From Ylistrum balloti (lineage: Eukaryota): a stretch of 64,000 bases of DNA. Numbering within the stretch: the stretch's first letter is position 1; each line of letters opens with the position of its first letter. Below the pieces are notes generated by a model that did no database searches, was not told the origin of the DNA, and saw only the letters and a list, made by a program, of their open reading frames with translations. Positions 1,912-41,024 of this stretch are shown here, one piece after another. The position numbers and the translations under genes were made by a program. Where the stretch lies: contig NW_026781955.1 of the NCBI RefSeq assembly GCF_031769215.1, positions 1,860,001-1,924,000 on the forward strand, read 5' to 3'.

Positions 1912-4900
1912 TCAATTTCCAGATATCCACCTAAGGAATGGCCTTTTGTTACAAAGACACCTTGTGGATCTGGTCCTGGATATGGCCTGTGTACTTTGAC
2001 AATTTGCTTCTTCCATGGCTATTTCTACATCACACGAATGTAACTGGGCTAGCGTCTCTATGAGTTTCATTTCAAGCAATTTCGCCTCTATGTGCTTTCT
2101 AATGTTTTCGTTCCGAAAGCATGCATGTTTCCTAATGGCCTTTACCACATTTATACATTCTTGGTGACATTTCACTGGATGACAGTTTTCTCTCAGCTGA
2201 AGGAAAAATAAGTCATTAAACTTGATATTGTTTCACAAGATACATTGTATTTGACAACCCAAGATAAATTCCAAAATCGCTCTAAACTGATTATATAAAC
2301 AAAATAAAAACAACATTTTGATAATTTGAAACAAATCTAGAATTACAAATTTAAATTTTAGTTATGCACATGAGGATCTATATCTTTGAAAAGCTTAAAA
2401 ACTTACGATCTTGAGATATAAAATACTTACATATTTGGCTACAATGGCAATATCTGGACCGGTAGTGAAGGAAACACTACAACCATCTATCACGGCATTA
2501 GGATCATTTAGTTGACAACCTGGTAAACCGCCAGAGCTCGTGCATCCCTTAGAAATAGCATTTTCAGCTGGATAAAACTGTAAGAAAGCAAAACACATTT
2601 CGTCCGTTGCCCGAAATCCAAAGGAGGTCGTCTTATTCCTGGATTCTGTGTTATATCTGCAAGTCGTATGAAGTGAGTCACCTGGTCGTATTTGTACATT
2701 GCCGTTCATTCTGAATCATAGAAAATGAGAAATTGTGACGAATATCTTAATTTTCTCTTGAGTTGGAAGTTATATGACATATATCTATTAAGAGTTTTTG
2801 TTTATTTGTATGCATATGTACATTTGTGAATAAGTTTTGTAGGGTGATTGTGTGTGTTTATGCATACTTATATAAGTAATAATTTGCTTTGATAATTGCT
2901 ATATGTGTAATGTCGATGATATTATCAGCGTTCTTGACGGCCCGTCAACACATAAAATGTCATTAGGGCCATCAACAGGTGAAATACACAGCGATCTTAA
3001 ACGAAATAACATCAAACGATCTAAGAATCGTAAATGGTTATACTATCAGAAAAGATGAAAATAGTAAGTCATATCCTATAATATAGATAGAAGGAAAGTC
3101 TGATGGTGTACATTTTTGATTTTACATGTAGCAAATTAAAACCCCGGTATATACGTCATAATGCACATGTCAATGGTAAAATAGAACACACAAAAATAAA
3201 TCCTTTTACAACGGTTTAACAATGAAAATTCACTGACAAATCCTGATGCATGTGGATTTCGGCTGGGACCGAAACTTATGTCGAACAAGTGCTCCTACAA
3301 TACTTAACTTCCATATTTTATTCACCCTGAATTAACTAGAATGACGAAACAGTATTATGAAGCAATGGATTCATTATTTGACTCTTTTGTATCGAAATCT
3401 ATATTTGTATTGCCATGGGCTGTTTACTTGTGGGTCTTTTGTACAATTCTTGAAGTATAACGGGACATGTCCATGTAAAGGCTATTTCTTATAGGTTTTT
3501 ACTCACATCTTGAATGTAAGATTGTCAGAAATAAGAAAAGTACTAAATCTATTGTTTCATAGAGTAAGTGTACCCAGATTATGATATTTATTTTGATCAA
3601 TTCAGACCTTCCTCAGTCGCCTCATTGCTTTCAGAATTTCAATCCTTATTCCTAGAAGGACGAAACAGATGTATGATGCAGTTTGATTCCTTATTTGGAC
3701 ATTTGTATGAGAAAGGTACCAGTTTTCCACTGTGTGCCTTTCATACAAATTTTAAAAATCCTGATATTCGATCGAATGCTTGTCCCATAACAGTACCCTA
3801 AATCATTGTTTAATGAGTATCCTTAACACATTGTTTTCTGTATGCAAACATGTCGGAAATGGTTAATCGGAAATACGAACTAAAAACAGAATCCCGAAAA
3901 TAAGTACTAAATAATAATGATTAAAAGCAACTACAAACTAGTTTACTTTTCCGAAGTGCTCAATACATATCATTTATATTCTCCATATTAGGGAAAACAA
4001 CAGTTCTTATACAGTTTCACAGAAAATTCTAGAAACATACAAACTCACCTATGAAAAACGGTATTTTGAAAGGAGAAATTAGGATTATTCCATAGAGTTC
4101 TTTCTGGCCCTCTACCTTGTCTTTTTAGCGTGACTTTGATCTCTCTACCTAAAAAATTGAAATGTCAGAGAAAACGAGAATAACGACTGTTGACACGGTT
4201 TGGTTCGTTTAATTATTATAATAGTATATGTTAACTCCTCTAACAAAGCTCAGGAAAGAGAAATACTTGAGACTTAACATCATGTTTACGTGATGGGTTT
4301 TCAATATTCCTACTCATTTAACCCGTATTCTTTCACTTATATATGCTTAAAGCATGACCATAACAATAAACTATTATTGTGACATGTCAATGAGATATAA
4401 AACATTATGTTATTATATATAGATAAAAACGATCATTAGACCGGGAAAGCTTATGCAAATTTCTGTTAAATATCACTATGTTTTTGATGATTTATTTCTA
4501 CACCGATAGAATTATATTTTCAGTTATATCTATTTTCCCTGTTAATACAACTTGTTTTTTCCCCTTATTTTATATTACAATACCTGCGTAATGCATGTGG
4601 TCGAAGCTTTGATATACGCTAATTGGCCCCGTCAGCTGGTTTCGTGTACATGAAGATGCACAAGTTCCTTCCACAGCGAAGGACTTTTCTTTCGGTGGAA
4701 TTGATAAATAGATATCACCAATTCTAAAAGTAGATAGGTTATACTGTCGCAGATTTGGAGTTAGAAACAAAGCCATTCCAGATGTATCTGTGAGACCGGT
4801 TCTCCTTAGTGGATTAATCCAGTGAACCTGAATATTGAAAGAAAGAAGATTGAACAAAAAACACACAAGTGAATAGCACATTTGCATAATTAAGAGTAAG

Positions 4901-7900
4901 ATTTAAGAGCCAAACAGTGAATGAAACTGCATCATCCAACTGTTTCGTCCTTATGGGACGCGTCTGTGATGCTAAGGGTCTGTCAAATATATTATTATTA
5001 TTTATCTCGTTATCTATTAGCTATTGGTTGATATTTACACCCTGTAAGCCTTAATCTTACAACATGCTAATAGAAGATGTTTAAAAAACTTCTTGGAACC
5101 ATCCTAAATGGTGTCAAGTGTTAGCACGGTCTATGTTTATTTCAAATTTGACTATAATGATTTTTAATGACTTAACTTGTTGTTTACAACTATTAAGAAT
5201 TGCCTGATCGTACCTGTAAAGAAAGATACCGCCCTCTGTTTGCACCAACACTGAAACCAAGGTGATCAGGATGGCAAAACCCTGATATGCCTGGCTGCCA
5301 TCCAGTAATTATATCCTGACATTTGGGATCTGGCAACATTTCACACGGGTATGGTGAGCCAACAGGATTCTGCAGCTCAGTTGCGGTCACTTCAATACGA
5401 CATATACAGAGATATATAAATGTAGATAAATATGGACTAAGAGTTCTGTGTTGTCATTTAAACAATTTCATTTCACTAGAAATAGGTACCAACTACCAAC
5501 ATTTTATTAACATACATGGTACTTGGTAAAACAGTTTAATATGCTGTAATTGTCTGACAAGATGAACTTTGACCGAAAGGGTGCTTCACGAACTAATAAA
5601 ACTCAGAATGCGCTGCAGAAAATAGTCCTTAATTATTTTTCTACTAATATTGTTTTTTTTATTTCTATACTTCTTTACTTTGACTCATTTTTTCTAGTTG
5701 TAATTGTAATTAGTTAAATATATATCTAGGTATTTATGATATATACAGTTTTACTAATCAGTATTTCAGTAAAGCCCATATCATTACGCCGTAATTGATC
5801 ACGTAAAAAACCAAACACACATGTGTACAGAAAAGGTCCATTTAACTTTGGAATAGCATTGTCATTGTAATAGAAATAAATAACACAAACTCATGGCTGT
5901 TATACATGGTATTTCTTTCACTCTCGTTAGTTGAATCATAAAGCTAATGTTTTTTGTAGCTTTTAAAATATAACGAATGTGGGTGGAAGAAATCCAATAT
6001 ACAAAAAACCCTCGATTTGTATCCTCTATATATGTTTTAATGCATTTCATAAATACGAACCTTATATATACATTCCATCACAGTTAGTTACATAACATGG
6101 ACATTTGTCGATTTACTAGATTTGTCGAACATTGTGGGATTGTGGATGCTAAGGAGTGTTCAGATTTGTTGTAGGTTTTATATATCCTGATTAAAAGAAT
6201 AAGAAAGTCAAATCCGTTACCATTGGTTTTATAAATGCAGCATTCGAAATGATCTAGTTATCATTTTACCGTGCTTGGAAAATGTCGATTTTTGCCATTA
6301 TCTAATCATAGTTAAAGACATTGTCTAGTTATACATGTTTAAATCCTCGGCAAAACCGACGTAACATGCTTCGGTAAGAGATTTATAACATTTATATTAT
6401 AAAATTATTGGAAACTTTGAGTATGTGATATAAGAAATCGACTGAATGATAGAAAATCTTACTTGTTTCACACGCAAAAAGAATCATATGATGTACTATG
6501 TTCTGGTTGTCAAGAATGGCTGTGTCTGCTATCACATGGTAGTCACGGTCTGCTGGAACCTCAAGGTTGACGCACATGAACGTGGCTTCTGTTGCTGGGA
6601 TGGGTATTCTTGGCATCCGAAATTGTAATTGCCGTACACCTATAGCATTATATTACATNNNNNNNNNNNNNNNNNNNNNNNNNNNNNNNNNNNNNNNNNN
6701 NNNNNNNNNNNNNNNNNNNNNNNNNNNNNNNNNNNNNNNNNNNNNNNNNNNNNNNNNNNNNNNNNNNNNNNNNNNNNNNNNNNNNNNNNNNNNNNNNNNN
6801 NNNNNGCCTTACGATGGAATAAAGATATATGTGAAGTAAAAGAACATCGTTTATTTACTTTTTCAAAGTCAAGCTTCCCCTACATTGTTAAATTCAACAT
6901 CTGAAAACGAAAAGTTAATTACGGTAAATTTTTCCCGGTCATCAGCATATATTCCCTTTCGAATAATTTCGCAATTATGTTAATACATGATTATCAACCA
7001 TGAAGTACATGACCCACTTGTCTAAATGATTAACCTGGTGTTTGAGAATTGTAATGTAAATAAAATGCTCCGTACTTGTTCCGTATGAAAAATTTACAGG
7101 TCAACAAGAACTATGGAAGTTATGAGTGATGATGTGACTCTCGTAAAACGTTCCTTACAACATGACATCACGAATGGGGTGATTGATATCTCTGGAAAGA
7201 ATGTGTAAAATGCAAACATGACAGTACCTGGTGCCCTTTAGTCTAAAACTCACCTGAAACGCTAATAGCTGGACATCGCATGCCAGTAGAATCACAGTTC
7301 AACCAGTTACCATTTCTCGCCATACAATTTGCTGAGTTCCAAGGTTCACAAACTCCTGTTGTGCAATTTTGGTGAAAAGGTTTTATAGTGTTAACAATAT
7401 TAATGAATCAGTTTTAATTCTATATTAAAAATTTATCACCTACGGGTTCAGAATCAATATACTGTTAATCGATTTATTTCCCTTGTAGATAAGGACTCTC
7501 GTCTGTCTTAATAATACAAAAAGGTATTGATATAATTTTTTTTACGTTTACTGTAACACCTGAAGCCCTTTTCGTAATATAGCTTCAGTGGGATTTCTAG
7601 AAATGCAAACATGTATCATTTTATATATCTATACAGGATGAACATAAAATACCCTTTGGTAAAACAATGGTTTAATAACTATGAATTCAGAGGTATTTTG
7701 TCCCGAAAAAAGTACAAGGATAATAAGACCATGTGTTCCGGAAGAGTACGTGTCTTCCTTATCATCAACGCAATGACAAAAGTTTTATTTTCCTGCTTTC
7801 TGTCAAATACGGGGATTTGTTAACCTAAATATCCTTTGGCCAGAGGCCGAAGGCAGAAGTATCACATCGGTATCATAAATCCTCTTGTTCACTTGACAAC

Positions 7901-8520
7901 TGGTCAGTAATTGTAATATAACAGTAGATAAATACCAGGATGTCCTGTTGGAGGGCCAGCTGGTGTCGCCCGTATTCTCCATTCACATCTAGGATCACCT
8001 AGCTCGACACCATTGCTTTGACCGTCGCCATCAGAATCATCAAGGCACAACGCCCGAGTCCACGTCTTTGTAGAAAAAATGTAGAGATAAAGATATATAA
8101 TTTGATTCATTTGAGAAGTTTAGCATCTTAAAATTTAAACAAAAGGAGACTAAATACTTTAAATATTGTTTTTGCAACTGTCAATTCCATTTCCCCAAAT
8201 ACCTATGATGCATTACTACTGAAATGCTGGTTAACCATGTTTGATATTCTGCCATTGTTCTTAGCGTTGTCGATAAAATTTTCCGTCTGTAATCATATAG
8301 TCATGTGCAGTTGACTTACCATGCCATTTGCTGCAAATGCAATTCCGAATGGATTTCTTGCTCCTCCTCCTCCCCTGGCCCTATGCCCAACACCAGGCCA
8401 TGGCAAATTAGAGTCACATGGATCAACAATATTGTTGCCATTTGGGATCCGTGTTTGGAATGTTTCAAACGCAGACGAAGCTTCCAAAATGGATAGGATA
8501 AGAACCAAATGGACTTTCAT
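1912..8520 (-). CDS. Secreted temptin-domain + copper type II ascorbate-dependent monooxygenase (DBH/tyramine beta-hydroxylase/MOXD1-like), paralogue A, 564 aa, 9 coding exons: 8320-8520, 7936-8065, 7254-7355, 6463-6639, 5214-5389, 4584-4827, 4049-4148, 2431-2710, 1912-2196
   Basis: All introns are GT-AG with consistent phases; CDS 1695 nt, open. Signal-like N-terminus MKVHLVLILSILEASSA. Temptin motifs IPNG..DPC..GVGH..GGG.RNPFG and LC.DDSDGDG.SNGVELGDP.CEW. Monooxygenase motifs VHHM, GWQPG, QVHW.NP, HMHYAG, DEMC. Exons 3 and 7 are absent from the ORF track and were read from the sequence (GVCEPWNSANC; GREIKVTLKRQG). An assembly gap lies in intron 3. Confidence 0.9.
6659..6805. other. Assembly gap (147 N) in intron 3 of paralogue A
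   Basis: Run of N. Confidence 1.
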
Positions 8521-15008: not shown

Positions 15009-18000
15009 ATGCATCACAGAACATCAAGGTAAGATATCTCTACTTAGAACTTATATAAGCGGACAGATTTTTTTTCTGTGCTATATTTTATACTCTTTTG
15101 TAGCTTGCTTTGCTTTGGAATAGCTGTTTTAGCCAAGATTCTGTCCTTTGAATCTTATTAGTTCCGTTTACAAATTGAGTGAATATTCATATAAATGCAT
15201 GTAGTTATACATTGTGATATTTTTACAGATATCTCTTTCTACATTTGGTTTGCCTGTATGATGTCACGATTGGATTTAGCATATTTAAAGAGAGAATACC
15301 GAACGGCGATAAAGTAGTTGACCCATGCGATAGCAATGAAATATGGACCGGATTGGGTCACCAAAACAAAGATGGTGGAGGACTTACAAACCCATTCGGT
15401 CAGGCTTTCAAGAACAATAACTTTGTAAGTAAGATGGCTACTACACAGTAACACAAAGGGGCATGTCAGTAAAATCCTTGTTCGAGAAATGAATCTAGAT
15501 GAAGAAAAAATAATGATTTGGTTCTATTGTGTCTATTTCGAAGGTTGTTTTGAAATGTGCTCTTCTCTTGTAAGTTTTTGTACGATCATAACAATCCTCT
15601 CAGCAACGAAACGCTTGCAAATTTCGTCTGTTATATTTCATCAAAAGGTTGTTTCTAGTATTGGAGGTAAATCATAAATAAGAGTATTTAGCTGTGTAAA
15701 GAAAACTGGAAAAGACATTGATCAAGAGATTACGTAAATCAGGTTTGTTGGTTCTAAAGGTATGGAACAAGACTTTTTGCATGGAAGATTCGGACGGGGA
15801 TGGAGCAACTAATGGAAGAGAGCTTGGAGATCCACTCTGTTTATGGAAATTTGGAACCAGTCCGATATTCCAACCCCTCGGCCATCCAGGTAAATTATTA
15901 ACTAGTAAGGCTCAATAGAGGTTATTGAGGTCAAGCTGTAAAACTGACAAACAGTAAGACAGCAAACATTATCATGATTTAGTCTACACATGACCCACTA
16001 GGAAACAGATGACGTAACCGTATTATTTGAAAGTGTACGTAATTGCAGAATTACTATTGGCAATCATAATGGTTTCCATTGTTATATTTTGACATGGATA
16101 TTGAGCAGAAATAATTTACGATAATCAACATTGATTTGAAAATGATTTTTTTTTGTCATGGAATCAGCTTCTAGATATCTGGAGAGAAAATATGAATAAT
16201 TTTAGACAAATACACGAAGACGTCAAATTATACTGCGTGGGATTTATATCTAAGATGATTTTCCGAAGTTGATAAAAATGAATAAATAACCCTGTGTATT
16301 CAACATTATTTTCCTATGTAAGATGTCATTCTCGATACTCCAGGGGTAACAATCACTTTCGATCTCTCAAACATTTCATGGCAAAATTGGAGGCTTCGTG
16401 TGCGACACCTTGTGGATAAAACGAAAATGCTACTTTGATCTCCTGATGTACATTAAACGAATCTCGACGCGCTTAACGGTATATTGTACTAGCTTTCAAA
16501 TTAGATATCGCTTCTTTGTCATCATCTCAGGAGCATACCAGTCTGTGGTTGGTCATTTTCTGTTCTCCTGAAACTCGCTCAAAGCCAAACAAATTACATC
16601 GCGTGTGCATTCGATTTTGCAAAGAAATGTACCAGGGGTGCAAGGATCGAAAGTGATCGTGACCTCTGGAGTATTGTGGATGGTAAGAATATAACAACAC
16701 ACAGTGTTTATAGCGGGATCATTAAAATTCGGGGCAGACTCAATTCAAGGACGTATAATATCAGGAAAATACACATAAGGTGTCATTAATAAGAATATAC
16801 CATATAGACGAGTTCAAATCTTAACTTTGATGTAGTATTGTCCAACTAGAAAGAGCACATGTTCCGTAATTGATACTTTGTCCAAACATACATAATGTCA
16901 ACTATTAACAGTAGTTGGTGTTTTTCTCATATGATGTAACACAACGCTTTAAACCACTTGTAAAACTGCAAAACATGGAGAAAAATCGGACTAGTGCTGG
17001 TTTCAACTTCGCCTTCTTTATGATTTATTAAATATCAAATCCTGCATCCAAGGCTTCATAAGCTTAGGATTTGATCTTAACCGCCATTACGTGGTCAGTA
17101 TACTGTAACGAAGCGCAACAGAGAACGAGAGCATCAGGTACTGAAGATTGTTCGTTCATTCTTGTTCTCAGGCGTTTGTGAACCATGGAGCTCTCCCTTT
17201 TGTCGGCGGAAAAATGCAAATTGGCTCAACTGTGTCAACCTTCCTGTAGAATGTGAACATATTAGAATGCGAGGTAAGTAGACGGATGTACAGCCATATG
17301 AAGCAAATTCCGTTTAATTTCAAATTGACATTTCCCATTCCAATTTATTGAATCTTCCACCAATGTCTACATTTTACGAGGCTTTTTGAATAACGTGTCA
17401 ATCTATTTTCACAGAAAGCAAAGTTTCAACACCTGTCACTTTCGAGCATTATTGCGACGAAAATGGTGTTGCCTTGATACCTAATGTAACTTTAAATTAA
17501 CTCATTGCGGTGGTCATTACGTGTTGTCGATTTGATAGGACGTCTTAATACGATATAATCTTGATAAGTATGACAAAGTGTAGCGATCAATTCGCATGGC
17601 AACAGGACAAAAGTACATGGCATTTTGTTCTGTCCAGGTGTCCGAAACATGCAGCTTAGATTGCCACCGACAAATGTACCTGCACAAGAGACCACGTATG
17701 TGTGTGTGAACCTGGAGTTTCCGTCAGATAGGGATTATCACGTGATCGCAGACACAGCTTTCGTAAACAACAGCAATGTTCTGCACCATATGATGTTGCA
17801 GGGTTGCTCTCCTGGAGGTACTGTGTTGTACTGTGTTATGAAAATGATGTCAGTATGAGAAATATTCTTGTTTAAAAAGATCGATTTCAGTGCAAAGATT
17901 GTATCTACCTAGACACCCAAAGTTTACCTCAATCTCTGAATATAGCCTGAATACTCTTCATTCTTAATCAAAACGGATCCGTCAAACAACCCCATTTATC

Positions 18001-21000
18001 TAAAAAGTGAAGATGTACTCGGATCAGCTGTTGTTTGATCGCTACGATCATTAACATAATCAAACTTTGCATACAAAATTAATTTGATATCTAGGTGTGC
18101 ACTTGACTTTATTTCTTGGGTCTAGCTTCAAAATGGAATTTTTTTTATCTCTGATTTGTTGAACCTTTAGCTTAGCAGGAGGAAGGAACCATGACAGCGT
18201 CGTTCATTTCTAAACAAAACAAAAAGAGATACATTTTCGTACAAAATGGCCGCCAAGCGCAGGCCTCTGATTGGACGAAATTTACACACCCTCCTATTTC
18301 CATGAAATTTGTTATATAGATGTAACTTTGACGATACAAACTACTTAAGGAGGACCAGGTGGTATTCGGTGTCGGCTGTTGAGAGGATCCGGTTTTGATC
18401 GATGTATATGTGCTGTGTGACTCGACGTATACAATTGTTACGCCTGTTTCTGATCAGACAAATTAGCTGACCTAGAGAGACGATTAGTTTCAATATGTGG
18501 GTTTTTATCAAATTTGCTATGTAGTCCCTCGAACACTACCATTAATCGCTTTAACATAATGATCACTGAGCGAGGTACTAATGTGGATTAATGTTGATAT
18601 TGACCGATTCCGATAAATTTCTTTATGTTGCGGAGGCGTTTGGGGCACTTATGTAACGGCCCCGTTACAATCAGAACTTGTTTCCTATTATCCTGATATT
18701 TTGCAACTGAAAGGTAAAATCTGCTTTACGTTTTGTTTGTCATGGTAAAGTGCAATATCTTTTTGTTTCTATAGTAACTGCCGCTGCATTAGCACATCCT
18801 CTTGGTCAAGTTTATCCCTGCAGTATGTTGGCGGAACCTGAACTGTGTCCAGATTTAATCACTGGGTGGACCCCGGCCATCAGTGGAAACTGTCACCCTC
18901 TCGAAGCGGGATACAAAATCGGGCGGACAGGTTCTCGGTATGCTGTTCTACAGGTAATTCATTACTTACAACCATATGGATATAACCATTGTTTCTCTAA
19001 ATCATAAAGAATAAACATTCGGTGAAGCAAACATGCAAACGATACACATGAAAGCCAAATCAAGAATGATTGATCTCTGGATCTTTTCCATTAAAACACA
19101 ATATTTGATGGAAGAATATCCTCAAACCATGCTATATAACACCTCACAAAGACAGTTTCCCAGCAAACTATATGATAAACATAACAATTTCGATTTCCTT
19201 GTGAATTTTCCATTTCTACATAGTGAAATTCTGTTTCCAAAGAGCTAAATTACACCTCAAACGGTGAGCTTTCCATTAAGATATATGATAAAAGTAATGA
19301 TTTCGAGCTCCTTGCTGTGAATTTTCCATTTCTATGCAGTAAACGTTTTGCTTCCACTGTCTACGGTGTTAAGAGAAATTTATCGACAACTGACAAATAA
19401 ACAAAGGAGAAAGATGTAATGCCGTATCATGATTTCATAAGGAAATGAGTACAATTTTGTATACCTGCCGTTCATTGTTATTTATATTAATTACTTTGAT
19501 TGGCCAAATGGCGAGTGTTGCCGATGAAGCTGAAGATGCTTTACCTTCCGGGATAAATATAAACTTCACATATCTGACAACAGTTAAGAATCGTTTACCT
19601 ATCACACTTGTTGGCCCAGATTGAAGCGCACAAAGGAACACATTCTGGGAGTATCCAGGAAAGCCCACGTGGTCGGGCAGGTCACCCCTAACCTCTTCAC
19701 GTCCGTTCAAGAACCGGACTCCGTACGTCTTGGTGAAAGGCGAATACATTACCGCCCAACCACCCTCTGGATTACCCGGTTTTAATCCTCTCGACCTTTT
19801 CAATGGTTGCTGTGAAATCTTTCTTTTGATAAACTTTTGCCCCTGTTTCATCGTCATTTAATTAGGATTCTGTCAACAAGCCGGTATTTTCTATTTAATA
19901 ATGCATTACTTCATCATTTAGTTGAATGCTTCTCGCGATAAGTAGACCATGTTTATATATTTTATGATGACAGGTGATGTGGAACAATCCTACCATGTCA
20001 GCTGGTGAAATGGATAGTTCCGGGATGATTCTGTTCTACACATCAAGACTGAGACCTTACAACATTGGAACTCTTCAAGTGGGAACTAAAAGTATTCTTA
20101 TTCCTCCAGGGGAAAAGGGGTTTGACATAGAATCAAAGTGCGATTCAAGTTGTACCAGACAGCAACTCTCAAGACCCATCTTTATCCTAAATGGGTACAA
20201 CCATATGCATTATGCAGGTATGAAATTTATTTGCGTATCTTTCAACAAAAACAAGTATTTATTTGATTGAAATTAATGTTTGCGGGTAGTGATCTAAATC
20301 GGATCACAAATTAATATGGGAGTTTTAACTTTCGTTTCTCTAATCTTTAATATAAATACTTAACTCTTTTGGTTGATACAAAACTAAAGTGAAAGATTTA
20401 TTTTAAATTCTTTGATCTCGCAGTTTTTTGTTTTTGTTTTTGTTTTTGTTTTTTTTGTATTTTTCTTACTTATCTTGAAGGTTTAATGTGTTTCTGACAA
20501 AATATTTAATGTAGATCCCATATCACATTAAGTATGTATTTCCGATCTGTCATGTTGTCTCTAATAAGTTTCTGTTTATATTTTGGCTGCAAAATTACAT
20601 TACAGTTCTATTTCTTTTTTCTTTCCTTTTTTCCTGAAAGTGCAAATATTCGTTCGCGGTTTTACCAAACGCATGATGCTAAAGCCATATTCCCTTTGGT
20701 TTTCGTTACATTTTCAAGATCCCTTTTTATGATCGATCTATTCTGTTCTTGAAAATTTTGAAGAGTAGAAATATTTTTTACAGTATATTCATACTATTTA
20801 TGAACAAATAGGAGTTTGGGTCATTACTCCCCTTGAGAGTTTAGATTCTCAAGAATAAGTCATTAAACTATCGACCACAGAAAATCAATGAAGGCATGGA
20901 GATTTTCACGGAGACATACAATTTTTTACTGCGCTAACATATATTCTATTCATCATAAATCAATAGATTCCGTGCATTAACAGAAAAGGTCGTGTAAATA

Positions 21001-23714
21001 AACGGGTTGATTTGAAGTTTAGATGTCACAGTACACTCTATATCTTGTCATGCACGTGATCAAGTTATAAACTGGTCAAAGTCATCGTGCTCGTATATAT
21101 ACATGTTACTTATCATAACTGATCCGAAAGGTTCGGGATAAATGTACGGTATTGTTATACCTACGGTATATATTTACTTATGTAATCTAGCGTATTGTGA
21201 TGTCATTTTATATAATTATATGACGCATTCACAGATGGAAATTTAATGTAACAGTGTAGACCATAGGGATAAAGCGAGAACGATTTCGAGTTTCACGTAA
21301 AAATGTTTGTTTTCTAAAACATTTGCTTAAAAAACGAAACCGTGAATAAAAGAATCTTCAATTCATTTCCTTGCGATTTATGTAACTCTTATCTTATTTA
21401 TTTATTTTGAGGATTTTTTAAATGAAAAAAAAAATTATTGGAAATTCTAAATTTCGTTTCATAAAACCATCCATTAAATGTTCTGTTCTGTAATATCCTA
21501 CATATACTTAGAAGTTGCAGCATTCACAAGTATTCCCATTGTGTTTTTTTTTTTTTCGTATAATTTTTGACAGGTGCTGAGATGAGGATAGCCATGAGAA
21601 AGTTTAGGGAAGTTCAAGATCATACAATCACACAAGATATCGTTTACGACTACGACAATCCTGTCATACATACGTAGGTATAATCATCACAAATTCAAAT
21701 GCGTTATAAAAAGGGTCATATCATTATCAGTTATGTTTTTTTTTCTTCTGAAATAGTAAAACTTAAAAATTAGGATATCATTTATTTACAGAATTTCAAA
21801 TAACATATCATAATCTTATATCATTTTAATATGCAGTCCTTTCACTCCACCTACTTTAAATGTTCGCCTGTACTCAATATATGATCATAGTACATGTATT
21901 GAGTTTAACATAACAAGAGACCCTGTATAACAGATTGATTAATGGTTTTGTAAAATAAAACCATTGTAGAAATATTAGAAGTATAAAATATAGAAACCAG
22001 TTCACACGAATCAGAGAGTCAAACATTTTTAGTCACCACATCGCTACTCCAAATGACATTTGCGTCTATATTGAATTAATCAGAGGCCAAATTTGATCAA
22101 AATAATTTCTAAGACATTTGAATATACATACAAAGGGGACATTATAGTGTTACAGTGTAAAGGACACTGTCACAGCATATAACTATAAATTAGATTTTTC
22201 TTTTCCTTGCCAGAAGGTTTACAATTTAGGCGTTCCTGATTTGAAAACCTGTCTATTCTTTATTTAAAAATATTGATTTGATAGCCGTTGGTACCGTGGA
22301 CATATGTAAGCTACATTCTTTACCATAACTGTATGCAATTATTGACAAAATGATATGTCAATTGACATCTCAATACTATAGCGTTAATATGGATTCTGGG
22401 TATATAAAAAATACTCGCCTTTGAACTTTTCCTGATATTGAAAGCAAGAATTAGGATACATGTAATATTTTCTCTGTCTGTCCCATATTCATTTAAGGTT
22501 ACTATCACCAGTGGAAATTAAGCCTAGAGATGAAATCTTCACTTCCTGTTCCTATAATACAATGGTCCGGAACACCACGACGTCCTTTGGTCAGACACCG
22601 TCGGATGAAATGTGTCTGGGATTGCTTAGCTACTACCCTGCAGAGAATATGTCTCCCCGGCACTGTTTGTCAGAGATGGGGTTACCCCAGTGTGTTCTCA
22701 ATGATCAAACTGCATTTATTGATAGGTGCCCGGTGGTCTCTTTCCCGTCCAGTCATGAGGCCACTAGCTTTATGCAGTTGGTAAGTCCAGAATACATAAC
22801 TATCATTTAATTAAAGGGTCACTTAATTTAGTGTTGTGAGAGTATATACAAAGTAACGTTGCTTCAAATGGGAAAAGTCGGTTAAGAATGATAATAAATA
22901 ATTCAAAAAACTTAATATGACTGTCTACTTGGTGGTAATAAAATAGACATTTCGCGCTTCAGCTTCTAGATGAGTCAGATCACACGCAAAAACTAAGAAA
23001 ATGCAACATCTATAAAGTATATATTCGCCATGAATTTCCATTTTGTTCGCAGTTATTAAAACGCAATATAATACACAGCACTTAACTTATATTTATACAC
23101 TGGCTGATAAAATCAATACTTACAAAAATATCTGTCTTCCGAAAGATAGAAGCTGCTCTAATGAAAATGTATTTATCACATAAGTATCATATCTTCAGTG
23201 TATGACCTTGAGTAAATTTGGTAGTCTGAAAGTTTCGATTGCTTCAATAGTGACGTCATAACTTCATGACATCATATACACTGTGACGTCACCTCATAAA
23301 GAAATGAACGTACATGACGATTGCCACTGATGAGTTTTGTAGTGTTTATTATATACAATTTTTCAAATAAATTTCGTCCCCATTTTTATTTCCCATGTTT
23401 TGCGTTTTTTACATCAACAAATATATTTTGCTGACGTAATATAATTCTGTTTACAGTTGGATGATAATTGCTTTCCTTTCCGATGCAATAGAGAGTGCAT
23501 AGACGTCGTAAAGAGAATCAGGAAACATCCGTGTTTTATTGGGAAAGTGAAGGAATATACAATTACCCAAATAGAAAAAATCCACGGACTGGAATCTATA
23601 GCACGATTAAAGTCCTGTGACGTGGAGATCGCTAGACAAGAGGGACTCTGTAAAAAACCTGTGGGCACGTCATCGTGTTTCTGTAGCGATTTCCCGATGA
23701 GACGTGTTATATAG
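15009..23714 (+). CDS. Secreted temptin-domain + copper type II monooxygenase, paralogue B, 563 aa, 10 coding exons: 15009-15028, 15229-15424, 15760-15889, 17172-17273, 17638-17817, 18775-18953, 19974-20217, 21574-21673, 22498-22780, 23457-23714
   Basis: GT-AG introns; CDS 1692 nt, open. Internal exon sizes mirror paralogue A (130/130, 102/102, 180/177, 179/176, 244/244, 100/100, 283/280). Motifs IPNG..DPC..GLGH..GGG..NPFG, CMEDSDGDGATNGRELGDP.C.W, GVCEPW, LHHM, GWTP, HMHYAG, YDYDNP, DEMC. The first 20-nt coding exon is the least certain part. Confidence 0.88.
16327..16682. mobile_element. MITE-like non-autonomous DNA transposon, copy 1 (intron of paralogue B)
   Basis: Imperfect TIRs of about 38 bp: left cattctcgatactccaggggtaacaatcactttcgatc, right gatcgaaagtgatcgtgacctctggagtattgtggatg. 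No ORF; a homologous copy lies at 24611-25051. No clear TSD. Confidence 0.75.
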
Positions 23715-24610
23715 TCTGCATGCATAATTAACACACCTGCAATAATGACAAACGAAACGCGCATCAATAATCACTATTTGTGGGGATAGGATCTGATATC
23801 TGATAGAGGCACTGACAACTGTAGGAAACATGACTCTTTATTAAGGTTTAACTTCGAAGGAATGGGCGGCAACTGTATACCAGACCCAATGAATTATTAC
23901 GTTACCAATAGTTTTCAGCGTTACACATCATGTATCGTGTAACTATACATAAAGTTTGTTGTAGCAGAGTTGGAATTCTATTGGTTTTGATGTTGAATAT
24001 TGTTTTTTAAAAAAAATTTCTATCTGGTACAGTGTAATTTGGGGTGAACTTTGTCAATGTTTGCATGTTTTGATAAGCAAACTATCGTGTTCGTGTCCTT
24101 TTAATTGTAAATTTGTAACAGTGAAGTCTGAGGTGATTGATTTATCAAATAAAGCGGACGATATCAATTAATGACGATAGTGAACTGATAACAATATCGA
24201 TATCTCCAAAACTATCTATTATATTGAAAATATACTTGTTTTTCGCTAAATTCATTAATCAATTATGCTACAAGACAATGAACACTTACATTACAGTTCA
24301 ACATCAATTTATACTGAGCCAAATTTCGTAAACGGTTGATGTCTCTAAAAACTTAAAAACCAAAAAATACTATTTGCAGTTTACCTCTCCATAGAATAAA
24401 AACATCTAGGATATTCTTATGTTAGCCTTGGTGCAACCCTAATTGTAATAAATTGCTTATTGTAATATTTATTACATTAAGGTCAAATTTATTTCAATAA
24501 ATCTAGAAATTAATATTTTCAGCTTTTGTTGTACAATGATAGCAAAATATATCATATACATTAATGTTTTCACAGAAAAAAATAGAAATTTATTTTCCAG
24601 GAAAATAAGC

Positions 24611-25051
24611 CAGCCCCGACATGCCATGTGTTACGATCACTTTCGCTCTCCGCCCCTCTGGAACATTTCCATGACAAAATTCCAGGTCCATGTGCGACAC
24701 TTTTTGGAAAAGATGAAAAGACTAGTTTGATCCTTTGACGTACATCAAACGAATCTTGGGGTAGCATAACGGTATATTGTACTGGATTCGAAGTTGGATG
24801 TCGCTCATTTGTAATCTCCAAAGGGAGAGTATCAGTCTGTAATTGGTCGGATTTTTTTTCTTCCACTCTAGACCAACCAAATTACTTCACCTGTGCTTTA
24901 ATGATCCTAGTCAGTGATTGGTAAGTTTTTTCCTCCTACACACCCGCTCTAGACCAATCAAATTACTTCACTTGTATCTTCAACTTTGCCAGGAAATGTT
25001 CAAAGGGTGCAAAGAGCAAAAGTGAGCCTAACCAAAGGAGTATCGAGAATG
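24611..25051. mobile_element. MITE-like element, copy 2, with an internal ~80-bp duplication
   Basis: Colinear with copy 1 (cgatcactttcg, gtgcgacac, acatcaaacgaatct, aacggtatattgtact, cagtctgt..ttggtc). Right end ggagtatcgagaatg is the reverse complement of the copy-1 left end. The segment ctctagacca.ccaaattacttcac occurs twice. Confidence 0.7.
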
Positions 25052-25498
25052 TTGTAAGCGTAGCCTCTGTAGTATGGAGGATGTAGTGAGCGTAACCCCT
25101 GGGTATAGAGGATGTAGAGAACGTAGCCCCTGGAGTATTGAGGATGTAGTGAGCGTAACCCCTGGGTATAGAGGATGTAGTGAGCGTTACCCCTGGGTAT
25201 AGAGGATGTAGTGAGCGTAACCCCTAGATTATGGAGGATGCAGTGAGCGTAACCCCTTGAGTATGGAGGATGTAGGGAGCGTAACCCCTAGATTATGGAG
25301 GATGTAGGGAGCATAACCCCTAGATTATGGAGGATGTAGGGAGCGTAACCCCTAGATTATGGGGGATGTAGGGAGCGTAACCCCTAGAGTAGGGAAGATG
25401 TAGGGAGTGTAACCCATAGATTATAGAGGATGTAGGGAGCGTAACCCCTTGAGTATGGAGGATGTAGTGAGCGTGACCCCAGGAGTATGCAGGATGTA
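25052..25498. repeat. Minisatellite, 31-32 bp unit, about 14 copies (gtagtgagcgtaacccctggagtattgaggat)
   Basis: Period read directly (atgtag at 25081, 25112, 25144). Confidence 0.9.
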
Positions 25499-26049
25499 GA
25501 TACATTTCATAACCTTAATGAAAATATTACTATTGAGCTGACGTCATGATACGTCATTTGTCATCCAAATGACATTCATATTGACAATAAATACAATTCG
25601 ATCACCGTTCGATAGTTAAGTGATGTTTTGGTATCCAATCCATCTACACCCTCAGTTCAGAATATCATTTATGCATCATTGAAATTTATCGACTGTTGGT
25701 TTTAGATTGATGTCCTTCGTAAGTTTAACACAGTAAATGACCATTTGATGTCAGCCATCAAATGTAGTTACCATATGCGGTACACATCCTTTATAATCAT
25801 GGCACATCGGTAATAAATCAAAAGGAATTAAAACACGGGATAATTGTTTCTGATATTACACCGGCTGTGGATATCGCCTTTCATTGCAAATCTAGAATTA
25901 GATAGAATAGAGGTAATTTATGAACTGAGATGCATCGCATTACATAGTATCTTCCTAGTAGGAGCCAGTGATGTTTAGGACGTAAATTGTTACCTTGACA
26001 GTGTATTACTGCTGTGTTACCTCCTGTTAACAACCAGAGTCTTTTTAGG

Positions 26050-39340: not shown

Positions 39341-40410
39341 AGATATCTGTGAGTCTATCCTAAAGGTATGGAACAGATGGTAGATAAATAGATATCTGTA
39401 AGTCTATCCTAAAGGTATGGAACAGATGGTAGATAAATAGATATCTGTAAGTCTATCCTAAAGGTATGGAACAGATGGTAGATAAATAGATATATGTAAG
39501 TCTATCCTAAAGGTATGGTAGATAAATAGATATCTGTAAGCCTATCCTAAAGGTATGGTAGATAAATAGATATCTGTAAGTCTATCCTAAAGGTATGGTA
39601 GATAAATAGATATCTGTAAGTCTATCCTAAAGGTATGGTAGATAAATAGATATCTGTAAGTCTATCCTAAACAGGTATGGATATCAGATGGTAGATAAAG
39701 GTATGGATAGATGGTAGATAATAGATATCTGTAAGTCTATCCTAAAAGGTATGGTAGATAAATAGATATCTGTAAGTCTATCCTAAAGGTATGGTAGATA
39801 AATAGATATCTGTAAGTCTATCCTAAAGGTATGGTAGATAAACAGATATCTGTAAGTCTATCCCACAGGTATGGAACAGATGGTAGATAAATAGATATCT
39901 GTCAGTCTATCCTAAAGGTATGGTAGATAAATAGATATCTGTAAGTCTATCCTAAAGGTATGGATCAGATGGTAGATAAAGAGATATCTGTAAGTCTATC
40001 CTAAAGGTATGGAACAGATGGTAGATAAATAGATATCTGTAAGTCTATCCTAAAGGTATGGTAGATAAATAGATATCTGTAAGCCTATCCTAAAGGTATG
40101 GTAGATAAATAGATATCTGTAAGTCTATCCTAAAGGTATGGTAGATAAATAGATATCTGTAAGCCTATCCTAAAGGTATGGATCAGATGGTAGATAACTA
40201 GATATCTGTAAGTCTATCCTAAAAGTATGGTAGATAAATAGATATCTGTAAGTCTTTCCTAAAGGTATGGTAGATAAATAGATATCTGTAAGTCTATCCT
40301 GAAGGTATGGTAGATAAACAGATATCTGTAAGTCTATCCTAAAAGTATGGTAGATAAATAGATATCTGTAAGTCTATCCTAAAGGTATGGAACAGATGGT
40401 AGATAAATAG
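39341..40410. repeat. Minisatellite with 49-bp and 40-bp unit variants (agatatctgtaagtctatcctaaaggtatgg[aacagatgg]tagataaat), about 24 copies
   Basis: Period 49 at the start (39341, 39390); 40 where the 9-bp segment is absent. Confidence 0.95.
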
Positions 40411-41024
40411 GATCTTAAATGAATTTCCAATTCATTTTGAAATGTCATGGAGCAAGTCTCTGAAGTATTTATTTTCACAAGCAAAAATTCTAATTTTGAG
40501 ACTAGTTTAATAAAATATGGATGACAAATCTAATAGAGGCTGTCATTTTGTTGCACAAAACATCATTTCCCTTATCATGACATCACAATATATGAATATA
40601 AGTACAGTTTATTCAATTTGTGCACTTGTAGGAGAAAGAGTAAGGCCAGATTATATATGATCAAGGCAACTTGTTTAGAACTATCTAGATGTAGCCATGT
40701 AAAAGCCCACGGTTAACATATCATACAGAGGGCCTTGGGAGTAGATGAAACGGCTGATTTCAGGTTTCAAAATGTTTTCTTATTGAATTGCATTTGATGG
40801 CAAAAATCTCAATGAAAAAAAAATAAAACAAAAACAAAAGGAGAAAAAAACCCAAAAAAACCCAAGTCTAATCCCAATTTAACTGAAATCACCAATACAG
40901 AATATACCCAGTGACCATAGCTTAGAAATATATGTTAACTTTACTTATTTTTCCACAGTTGCAAAACAAATTATCAGCTTGAATTAATCATTCTTGTTGG
41001 CCTGTATGGATGTGTGCATTGGGT

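Follow-up and report, generated by a model that had tools for sequence, protein, structure and literature searches.

Methionine at the predicted third CuH ligand position of a scallop Temptin_C-monooxygenase paralogue

A natural ligand replacement in paralogue B

We analysed a 64,000-nucleotide stretch of the genome of the scallop Ylistrum balloti (RefSeq assembly GCF_031769215.1, contig NW_026781955.1, positions 1,860,001 to 1,924,000 of the forward strand). This whole stretch is called the window below, and positions in it are counted from its first letter. It holds two head-to-head genes of the PHM/DBH class of copper monooxygenases, paralogue A and paralogue B. In this class one copper, CuH (the electron-transfer copper of the H site), is bound by three histidines and the other, CuM, by an H-x-H motif plus a methionine. 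In B, an ATG codon for methionine stands where the third CuH histidine is expected. The reading that we favour, with moderate confidence and by analogy with engineered PHM, is that B would be a copper protein with an H site that relies on the adjacent HH pair, with position 271 dispensable and the methionine at most an optional third ligand.

The letters at 19974-19991 read GTG ATG TGG AAC AAT CCT (VMWNNP) and lie immediately 3' of a polypyrimidine-poor acceptor (...gacag). Joined to exon 6, which ends at 18953, the peptide across the junction is LQ-VMWNNP, with Met271 encoded at 19977-19979 on the plus strand. The minus strand of A has GTT CAC TGG ATT AAT CCA (VHWINP) at the equivalent place, and its CAC at 4824-4822 encodes an intact His264.

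To place this residue we used structures of both reference enzymes. The VH of A exon 6 aligned to chain positions 293-294 of human DBH (4ZEL), and the alignment of B began one residue further on, with its W at chain position 295. A chain-to-residue offset of 39 turns the HH, HMH and DEMC motifs of B into H262/H263, H412/H414 and M487, the numbers of the DBH ligands. Since this offset fits the other DBH motifs, the methionine of B falls at H333. For PHM, the methionine of the Mizuhopecten yessoensis orthologue (P0154) aligned to the alanine of the H172A structure 6AMP and the preceding glutamine to Q170. The PHM offset of 44 was checked on H107/H108, on M314 and on the disulfide cysteines C81, C114, C126 and C131. 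By this gap-free alignment the methionine of B sits exactly at the position of DBH H333 / PHM H172.

The remaining copper ligands are all in place. At CuH, the HH pair is there (17784-17789, DBH H262/H263) and only the third position differs; at CuM, B has both histidines of HMH (20202-20210, DBH H412/H414) and the methionine of DEMC (22610-22612, DBH M487 / PHM M314). Paralogue A keeps all six ligands. The initial annotation had described the replaced histidine, the complete set in A and the retained motifs in B from the letters alone, and each of these points agrees with the codons and alignments above. No other histidine takes the ligand position. A compensating role was considered for the histidine of the invariant ALAHPLG motif of B and rejected, because an aligned histidine also occurs in human DBH and in another paralogue, and it is hence not a B-specific substitute. 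The ligand strand of B has no further histidine besides this one.

Orthologues, history and constraint

Three further genera have a B orthologue. Those of Mizuhopecten yessoensis (P0154) and Pecten maximus (P0155) are each 71% identical, and Argopecten irradians has P0236, plus the 99.5%-identical P0156. The head-to-head A/B order is retained in all three. In the maximum-likelihood tree the A and B clades are sisters within a scallop-specific expansion (100/99) with stems of equal length (0.58 and 0.61), and within the B clade Pecten and Argopecten are sisters (100/99). The A/B duplication is older than the divergence of these four scallop genera.

Among the B genes the site codon is GCG (Ala) in Pecten maximus and ATG in the other three genera, Ylistrum, Mizuhopecten and Argopecten; all A genes have CAC or CAT. 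The methionine therefore recurs in two of the three related genera and does not extend to Pecten. The simplest history would be a change from histidine to methionine on the B stem, followed by methionine to alanine in the Pecten line. Since no codon position is shared between CAY and ATG, three base changes were needed and the B stem must have passed two intermediate residues, none of them a standard ligand of the site. In Argopecten irradians, the minus strand of L005:2942-3214 contains three closely spaced copies of the VMWSNP exon start; two of them are preceded by a ...ctag acceptor, and only one matches the P0156 contig sequence.

We then compared the constraint on the two genes. Nei-Gojobori dN/dS was 0.07-0.12 in the B clade and 0.09-0.11 in the A clade; dS is near saturation (1.4-2.2, with three pairs not computable), which makes these ratios rough. 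The dN between Ylistrum and Pecten was 0.185 for B and 0.194 for A, and over the same three genera 61.6% of the columns were invariant in B and 58.7% in A. All 27 cysteines that are invariant in A are likewise invariant in B. By these measures the A and B clades are equally constrained, and B shows no decay. None of the four B orthologues has a change in the other five copper ligands, in Q170 or in the HHM motif. The methionine itself is less exceptional: at least three of the four species agree in 76% of the B columns, so its presence in three of four is ordinary, and with about 0.7 substitutions per site along the whole B crown, one replacement at the site corresponds to the rate of an average site.

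Could the ATG be an assembly error, or B a gene free of constraint? We consider this highly improbable. Two observations fit it. No RNA run of Ylistrum is indexed, and Ylistrum B is absent from the public protein collections searched, in which A is present; B may be missing from public annotation or modelled differently there. As for RNA, a query with B exon 7 and a control with the matching A exon found only one DNA run of this species. Since the A control was equally blank, the lack of Ylistrum RNA matches is uninformative.

The observations on the other side are more direct. A second public DNA run yields genomic contigs that differ from the window by about 1%, and it therefore probably derives from another individual. 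One of these contigs spans 18074-20272 and has no listed difference in 19974-19991 (2 of its 18 differences are unlisted). The only listed change within B exon 7 is A>G at 20088, which turns Lys into Glu. The contigs of this run contain the introns and no splice joints. The same ATG occurs in two other genera, which, with the second run, answers the concern about a sequencing slip. A Logan contig of 2416 nt from SRR19746222 carries the complete 557-aa reading frame of Argopecten B, intron-free and with ATG at the site. The Argopecten genome has the same coding sequence divided by introns, and so the contig is most simply a spliced transcript. Finally, the B reading frame in Ylistrum is intact, as first noted, with GT-AG at all introns and no internal stop or frameshift, and the decay that a dN/dS near one would have indicated was not seen (about 0.1). 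On this evidence we rejected the artefact or pseudogene explanation.

Ligand loss in the wider family

To see how unusual the replacement is, we looked at the same position in related proteins. Among the 150 best library representatives, 127 motif copies have histidine, nine have another residue and none has methionine. Histidine is found at the site in 94 of 103 full-length family members, with another residue in eight and a gap in one, and methionine occurs in the scallop B clade only. Each of the other ligand positions has been lost in 2-4 of these 103 relatives, that is, less often than the third CuH histidine. This ligand alone is lost in the scallop B clade and in one Lymnaea protein, which has proline. 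Paralogues that look degenerate have lost several ligands: the Sinanodonta protein P0108, the protein P0218, the scallop Arg group P0221/P0092 and the Ylistrum locus L021.

In the Ylistrum genome the exon is present at least 17 times: 12 copies have histidine at the site, one (B) has methionine, and arginine, glutamine and leucine occur in one each, with one copy ambiguous. The Arg, Gln and Leu paralogues lie at L018 (C476:1003567-1003803), L020 (C165:506615-506848) and L021 (C278:302129-302359), respectively. In L021 leucine also replaces the first CuM histidine.

Ligand loss also touches the A clade. In the Argopecten A orthologue (P0151, L005:10001-30820) HMH has become HMN and DEMC has become DETC, and two CuM ligands are thereby lost. 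The dN/dS between Argopecten A and Pecten A is about 0.09. Argopecten A is likely a pseudoenzyme under constraint.

These losses bear on the possibility that B is non-catalytic; the initial annotation had named a non-catalytic copper-binding role as an alternative. Here the ligand change would mark a lost hydroxylase function: B would retain its fold, possibly with some capacity to bind copper, and would serve in the mantle or shell matrix for binding, structure or signalling. The Argopecten A case, in which the family tolerates ligand loss under constraint, and the Arg, Gln and Leu paralogues of the same genome are in line with such a role, as is the finding that H172A-type changes lower PHM activity to less than about 5% (PMC12164859). 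The proposed setting has precedents as well. The shell matrix of Pinctada contains a Cu2_monooxygen-domain protein (PMC4660305). In bivalve mantle, differential expression is reported for DBH-like and temptin genes, and the mantle genes that change expression in M. gigas and M. yessoensis include ones with Cu2_monooxygen and Cu2_monoox_C domains (PMC11464482). However, paralogues that look dead have lost several ligands, and B keeps five ligands, Q170 and HHM without change in four orthologues. We rate a non-catalytic B as unlikely.

How B may work

The initial annotation had proposed that the methionine may serve as a working ligand in a retuned CuH site. In its full form, the proposal is that the site was selected for: the thioether of the methionine would be the true third CuH ligand, both coppers would be His2Met, and the raised H-site potential would retune the enzyme for another donor or substrate. 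Several points speak for it. The methionine is ancestral to the living B genes and persists in three genera, it occupies the ligand position exactly and shares its strand with Q170, and a thioether is a good Cu(I) ligand. The H site of PHM/TBM has been proposed to take a methionine (M109) at low pH, with an expected change in potential, but this Met-on form is inactive (PMC2988203). The comparisons described above also weakened the proposal as it was stated. The Pecten maximus protein has alanine with all other ligands intact, the replacement rate at the site is average over the B crown, and 76% of columns are as well conserved as the methionine. The path from CAY to ATG takes three changes via residues that are not standard ligands, and other paralogues in the same genome have arginine, glutamine or leucine at the site. 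We regard a selected His2Met site as possible but doubtful.

Taken together, the alanine of Pecten and the PHM literature make an H site based on the HH pair the most economical reading. Both copper sites of B would still bind copper, through the HH pair and through H-x-H and methionine. The H site would rest mainly on the two adjacent histidines as a two-coordinate Cu(I), as reported for PHM H172A, and the thioether of Met271 would be a weak or optional third contact at most and not required. In PHM, the H172A variant binds two Cu and its residual activity is fully coupled, with hydrogen-atom abstraction about 12,000-fold slower (PMC12164859). The reduced H site of the PHM class has a two-coordinate look by EXAFS, an X-ray absorption method, with one histidine weakly bound (PMC2988203). 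By analogy with H172A, B may then be a slower or differently tuned hydroxylase and not a dead protein. It would act probably in a mantle or shell-matrix setting; a secreted mantle role is suggested by the mantle and shell Cu2_monooxygen proteins cited above, which share at least this domain with B. We also considered a link to the 'Temptin' that is up-regulated in Yesso scallop mantle (A0A210QTH5) and dropped it, as this accession matches no protein of the A/B locus.

Several points weigh against this favoured reading. First, crystals of PHM H172A grown without added copper had an empty H site and no peptide bound (PMC6123673). Second, the slow hydrogen abstraction of H172A and this empty crystal site indicate that a two-His H site may be close to inactive. 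Third, Argopecten A is constrained without two CuM ligands, so that, as far as these genes tell, the A/B clade can serve non-catalytically. Fourth, at the clade mean invariance of 0.55, all five ligands would be kept in four species by chance with a probability of about 0.05, and as a sign of function their retention is suggestive, not strong. Fifth, the evidence for a B transcript comes from Argopecten and not from Ylistrum itself.

Gene models, domains and fold

With a GC content of about 0.33 the window is AT-rich, and interruptions divide its coding pieces, which marks it as eukaryotic. A comparison of all its reading-frame stretches gave eight pairs of similar pieces in collinear order, at 40-52% identity. 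One set runs along the minus strand from about 8590 to 1915, and the second occupies about 15220 to 23710 on the plus strand. Eight collinear pairs on opposite strands identify A and B as two head-to-head paralogues, and the two proteins are 45.6% identical. Splice sites were placed with related full-length proteins as guides. Paralogue A (1912..8520, minus strand) has nine exons and encodes 564 aa. Its model agrees in all 564 residues (100% identity) with the NCBI entry 'uncharacterized protein LOC132543325 [Ylistrum balloti]', which validates the gene-modelling method.

Gene B (15009-23714, plus strand) has ten exons and encodes 563 aa. All ten exon lengths (20, 196, 130, 102, 180, 179, 244, 100, 283 and 258 nt) recur in the Mizuhopecten yessoensis orthologue as annotated. 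Exon 1 (15009..15028) consists of the ATG plus 17 nt and starts the signal peptide; the Mizuhopecten orthologue also has this 20-nt first exon. Exon 2 (15229..15424) contains the end of the signal peptide and the first half of Temptin_C, and exon 3 (15760..15889) the second half. A Cys-rich linker is encoded by exon 4 (17172..17273). The N-terminal Cu2_monooxygen domain with the HH pair lies in exon 5 (17638..17817), and exon 6 (18775..18953) ends with ...AVLQ, whose glutamine at 18951-18953 corresponds to PHM Q170. Exon 7 (19974..20217) opens with VMWNNP and carries HMH. It is followed by exon 8 (21574..21673), by exon 9 (22498..22780), which encodes Cu2_monoox_C with DEMC, and by exon 10 (23457..23714), which includes the stop codon.

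Domain searches support this layout. Temptin_C (PF24784) was matched in exons 2 and 3 with 50.4 and 58.1 bits (Pfam cut-off 27), Cu2_monooxygen (PF01082) in exon 5 with 37.8 bits (cut-off 30), to which exon 6 adds 22.9 bits, and Cu2_monoox_C in exons 7 and 9 with 27.5 and 45.7 bits (cut-off 23). None of the exons of B or A matched the Pfam DOMON domain at E <= 1, and the precomputed Pfam domains of the orthologues, P0154 among them, are PF24784, PF01082 and PF03712 only. The N-terminus of B is hydrophobic and signal-like, and the orthologues have the same architecture, with Temptin_C ahead of the monooxygenase core in a single secreted polypeptide. B is a scallop-specific paralogue of a secreted fusion of Temptin_C, a Cys-rich linker, a two-domain copper type II monooxygenase core with the PHM/DBH fold, and a helical tail.

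The two-domain beta-sandwich fold was tested on the Met-bearing Mizuhopecten protein P0154, which stood in for B. Its AlphaFold2 model has a mean pLDDT of 88.5, and its top structural matches in Foldseek were DBH (4ZEL, E 6e-30) and PHM (1PHM, target-normalised TM 0.76).

The last exons of the A/B clade (1912-2196 and 23457-23714 in the window) encode a conserved tail, C-x-C...P-[MF]-x-R. Most of the other scallop paralogues compared carry a hydrophobic C-terminal stretch, a possible membrane or GPI anchor, which the A/B clade lacks. Cytochrome b561 is the electron supplier of DBH and PHM. A cytochrome b561 domain (PF03188) occurs in the Temptin_C-monooxygenase relatives P0186, P0187, P0190, P0192, P0194-P0196 and P0198. 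Of these, at least P0187 comes from a protist transcriptome (MMETSP) and the others are metagenome or Logan proteins. Elsewhere in the window, runs of mutually similar short reading frames mark tandem-repeat arrays at 24570-25545, 30886-31896, 36035-38290 and 39248-40431.

Relation to known systems and meaning

Of the known enzymes, human DBH (4ZEL) and insect tyramine beta-monooxygenase are the best match to the B type (E 4e-36 by sequence, 6e-30 by structure), and their ligands map one to one. B differs from DBH in having Temptin_C before the core instead of DOMON, and in the replacement of H333. Rat PHM and its engineered H172A variant (PDB 6AMP, 6AN3) share the two-domain fold, and B has equivalents of HH, Q170, H-x-H and Met314. 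The same position 172 is altered in H172A and in B, but in B the change is natural and leads to methionine, or to alanine in Pecten. PHM is only about 22% identical and lacks the Temptin_C and C-terminal helical domains of the B protein. The Temptin_C-monooxygenase fusions of lophotrochozoans and protists, labelled in their sources 'DBH-like monooxygenase protein 1', 'tyramine beta-hydroxylase-like' or 'Temptin', have the same domain order as B, which is nested in the scallop expansion; most of their full-length members keep the histidine that is methionine in B. The low-pH Met-on form of PHM/TBM resembles B in placing a thioether beside two histidines, with a potential shift expected (PMC2988203). 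However, in that inactive form a conformational change lets the methionine of the HHM motif supply the thioether, whereas the methionine of B replaces the third histidine permanently and its ligation is putative.

Our literature search found no paper on these protein accessions or on H172M, H333M or H317M. The fold, the family and the effect of removing the ligand were known before; the new elements are a natural, ancient variant in a selectively maintained gene and a natural His/Met/Ala series. If the doubtful case of a selected thioether ligand were nevertheless true, the scallop B proteins would be the first natural PHM/DBH members with a His2Met electron-transfer copper, a pseudo-symmetric two-copper enzyme with a raised H-site potential, and the alanine form of Pecten would be its natural control.

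The two coppers of PHM lie about 11 Å apart. H172 is among the least understood ligands of this enzyme class, and its removal slows the chemistry at the other copper by about four orders of magnitude (PMC12164859). At this single position scallops provide a natural series, with histidine in A, methionine in B of three genera and alanine in B of Pecten, in which the rest of the B copper sites is constant and purifying selection acts throughout. Such a series could reveal the purpose of the third H-site ligand and tell whether a thioether substitutes for it. The molluscan Temptin-monooxygenase expansion holds members with full and with poor ligand sets, so that 'dopamine beta-hydroxylase-like' is an automatic label for these proteins and not a function.

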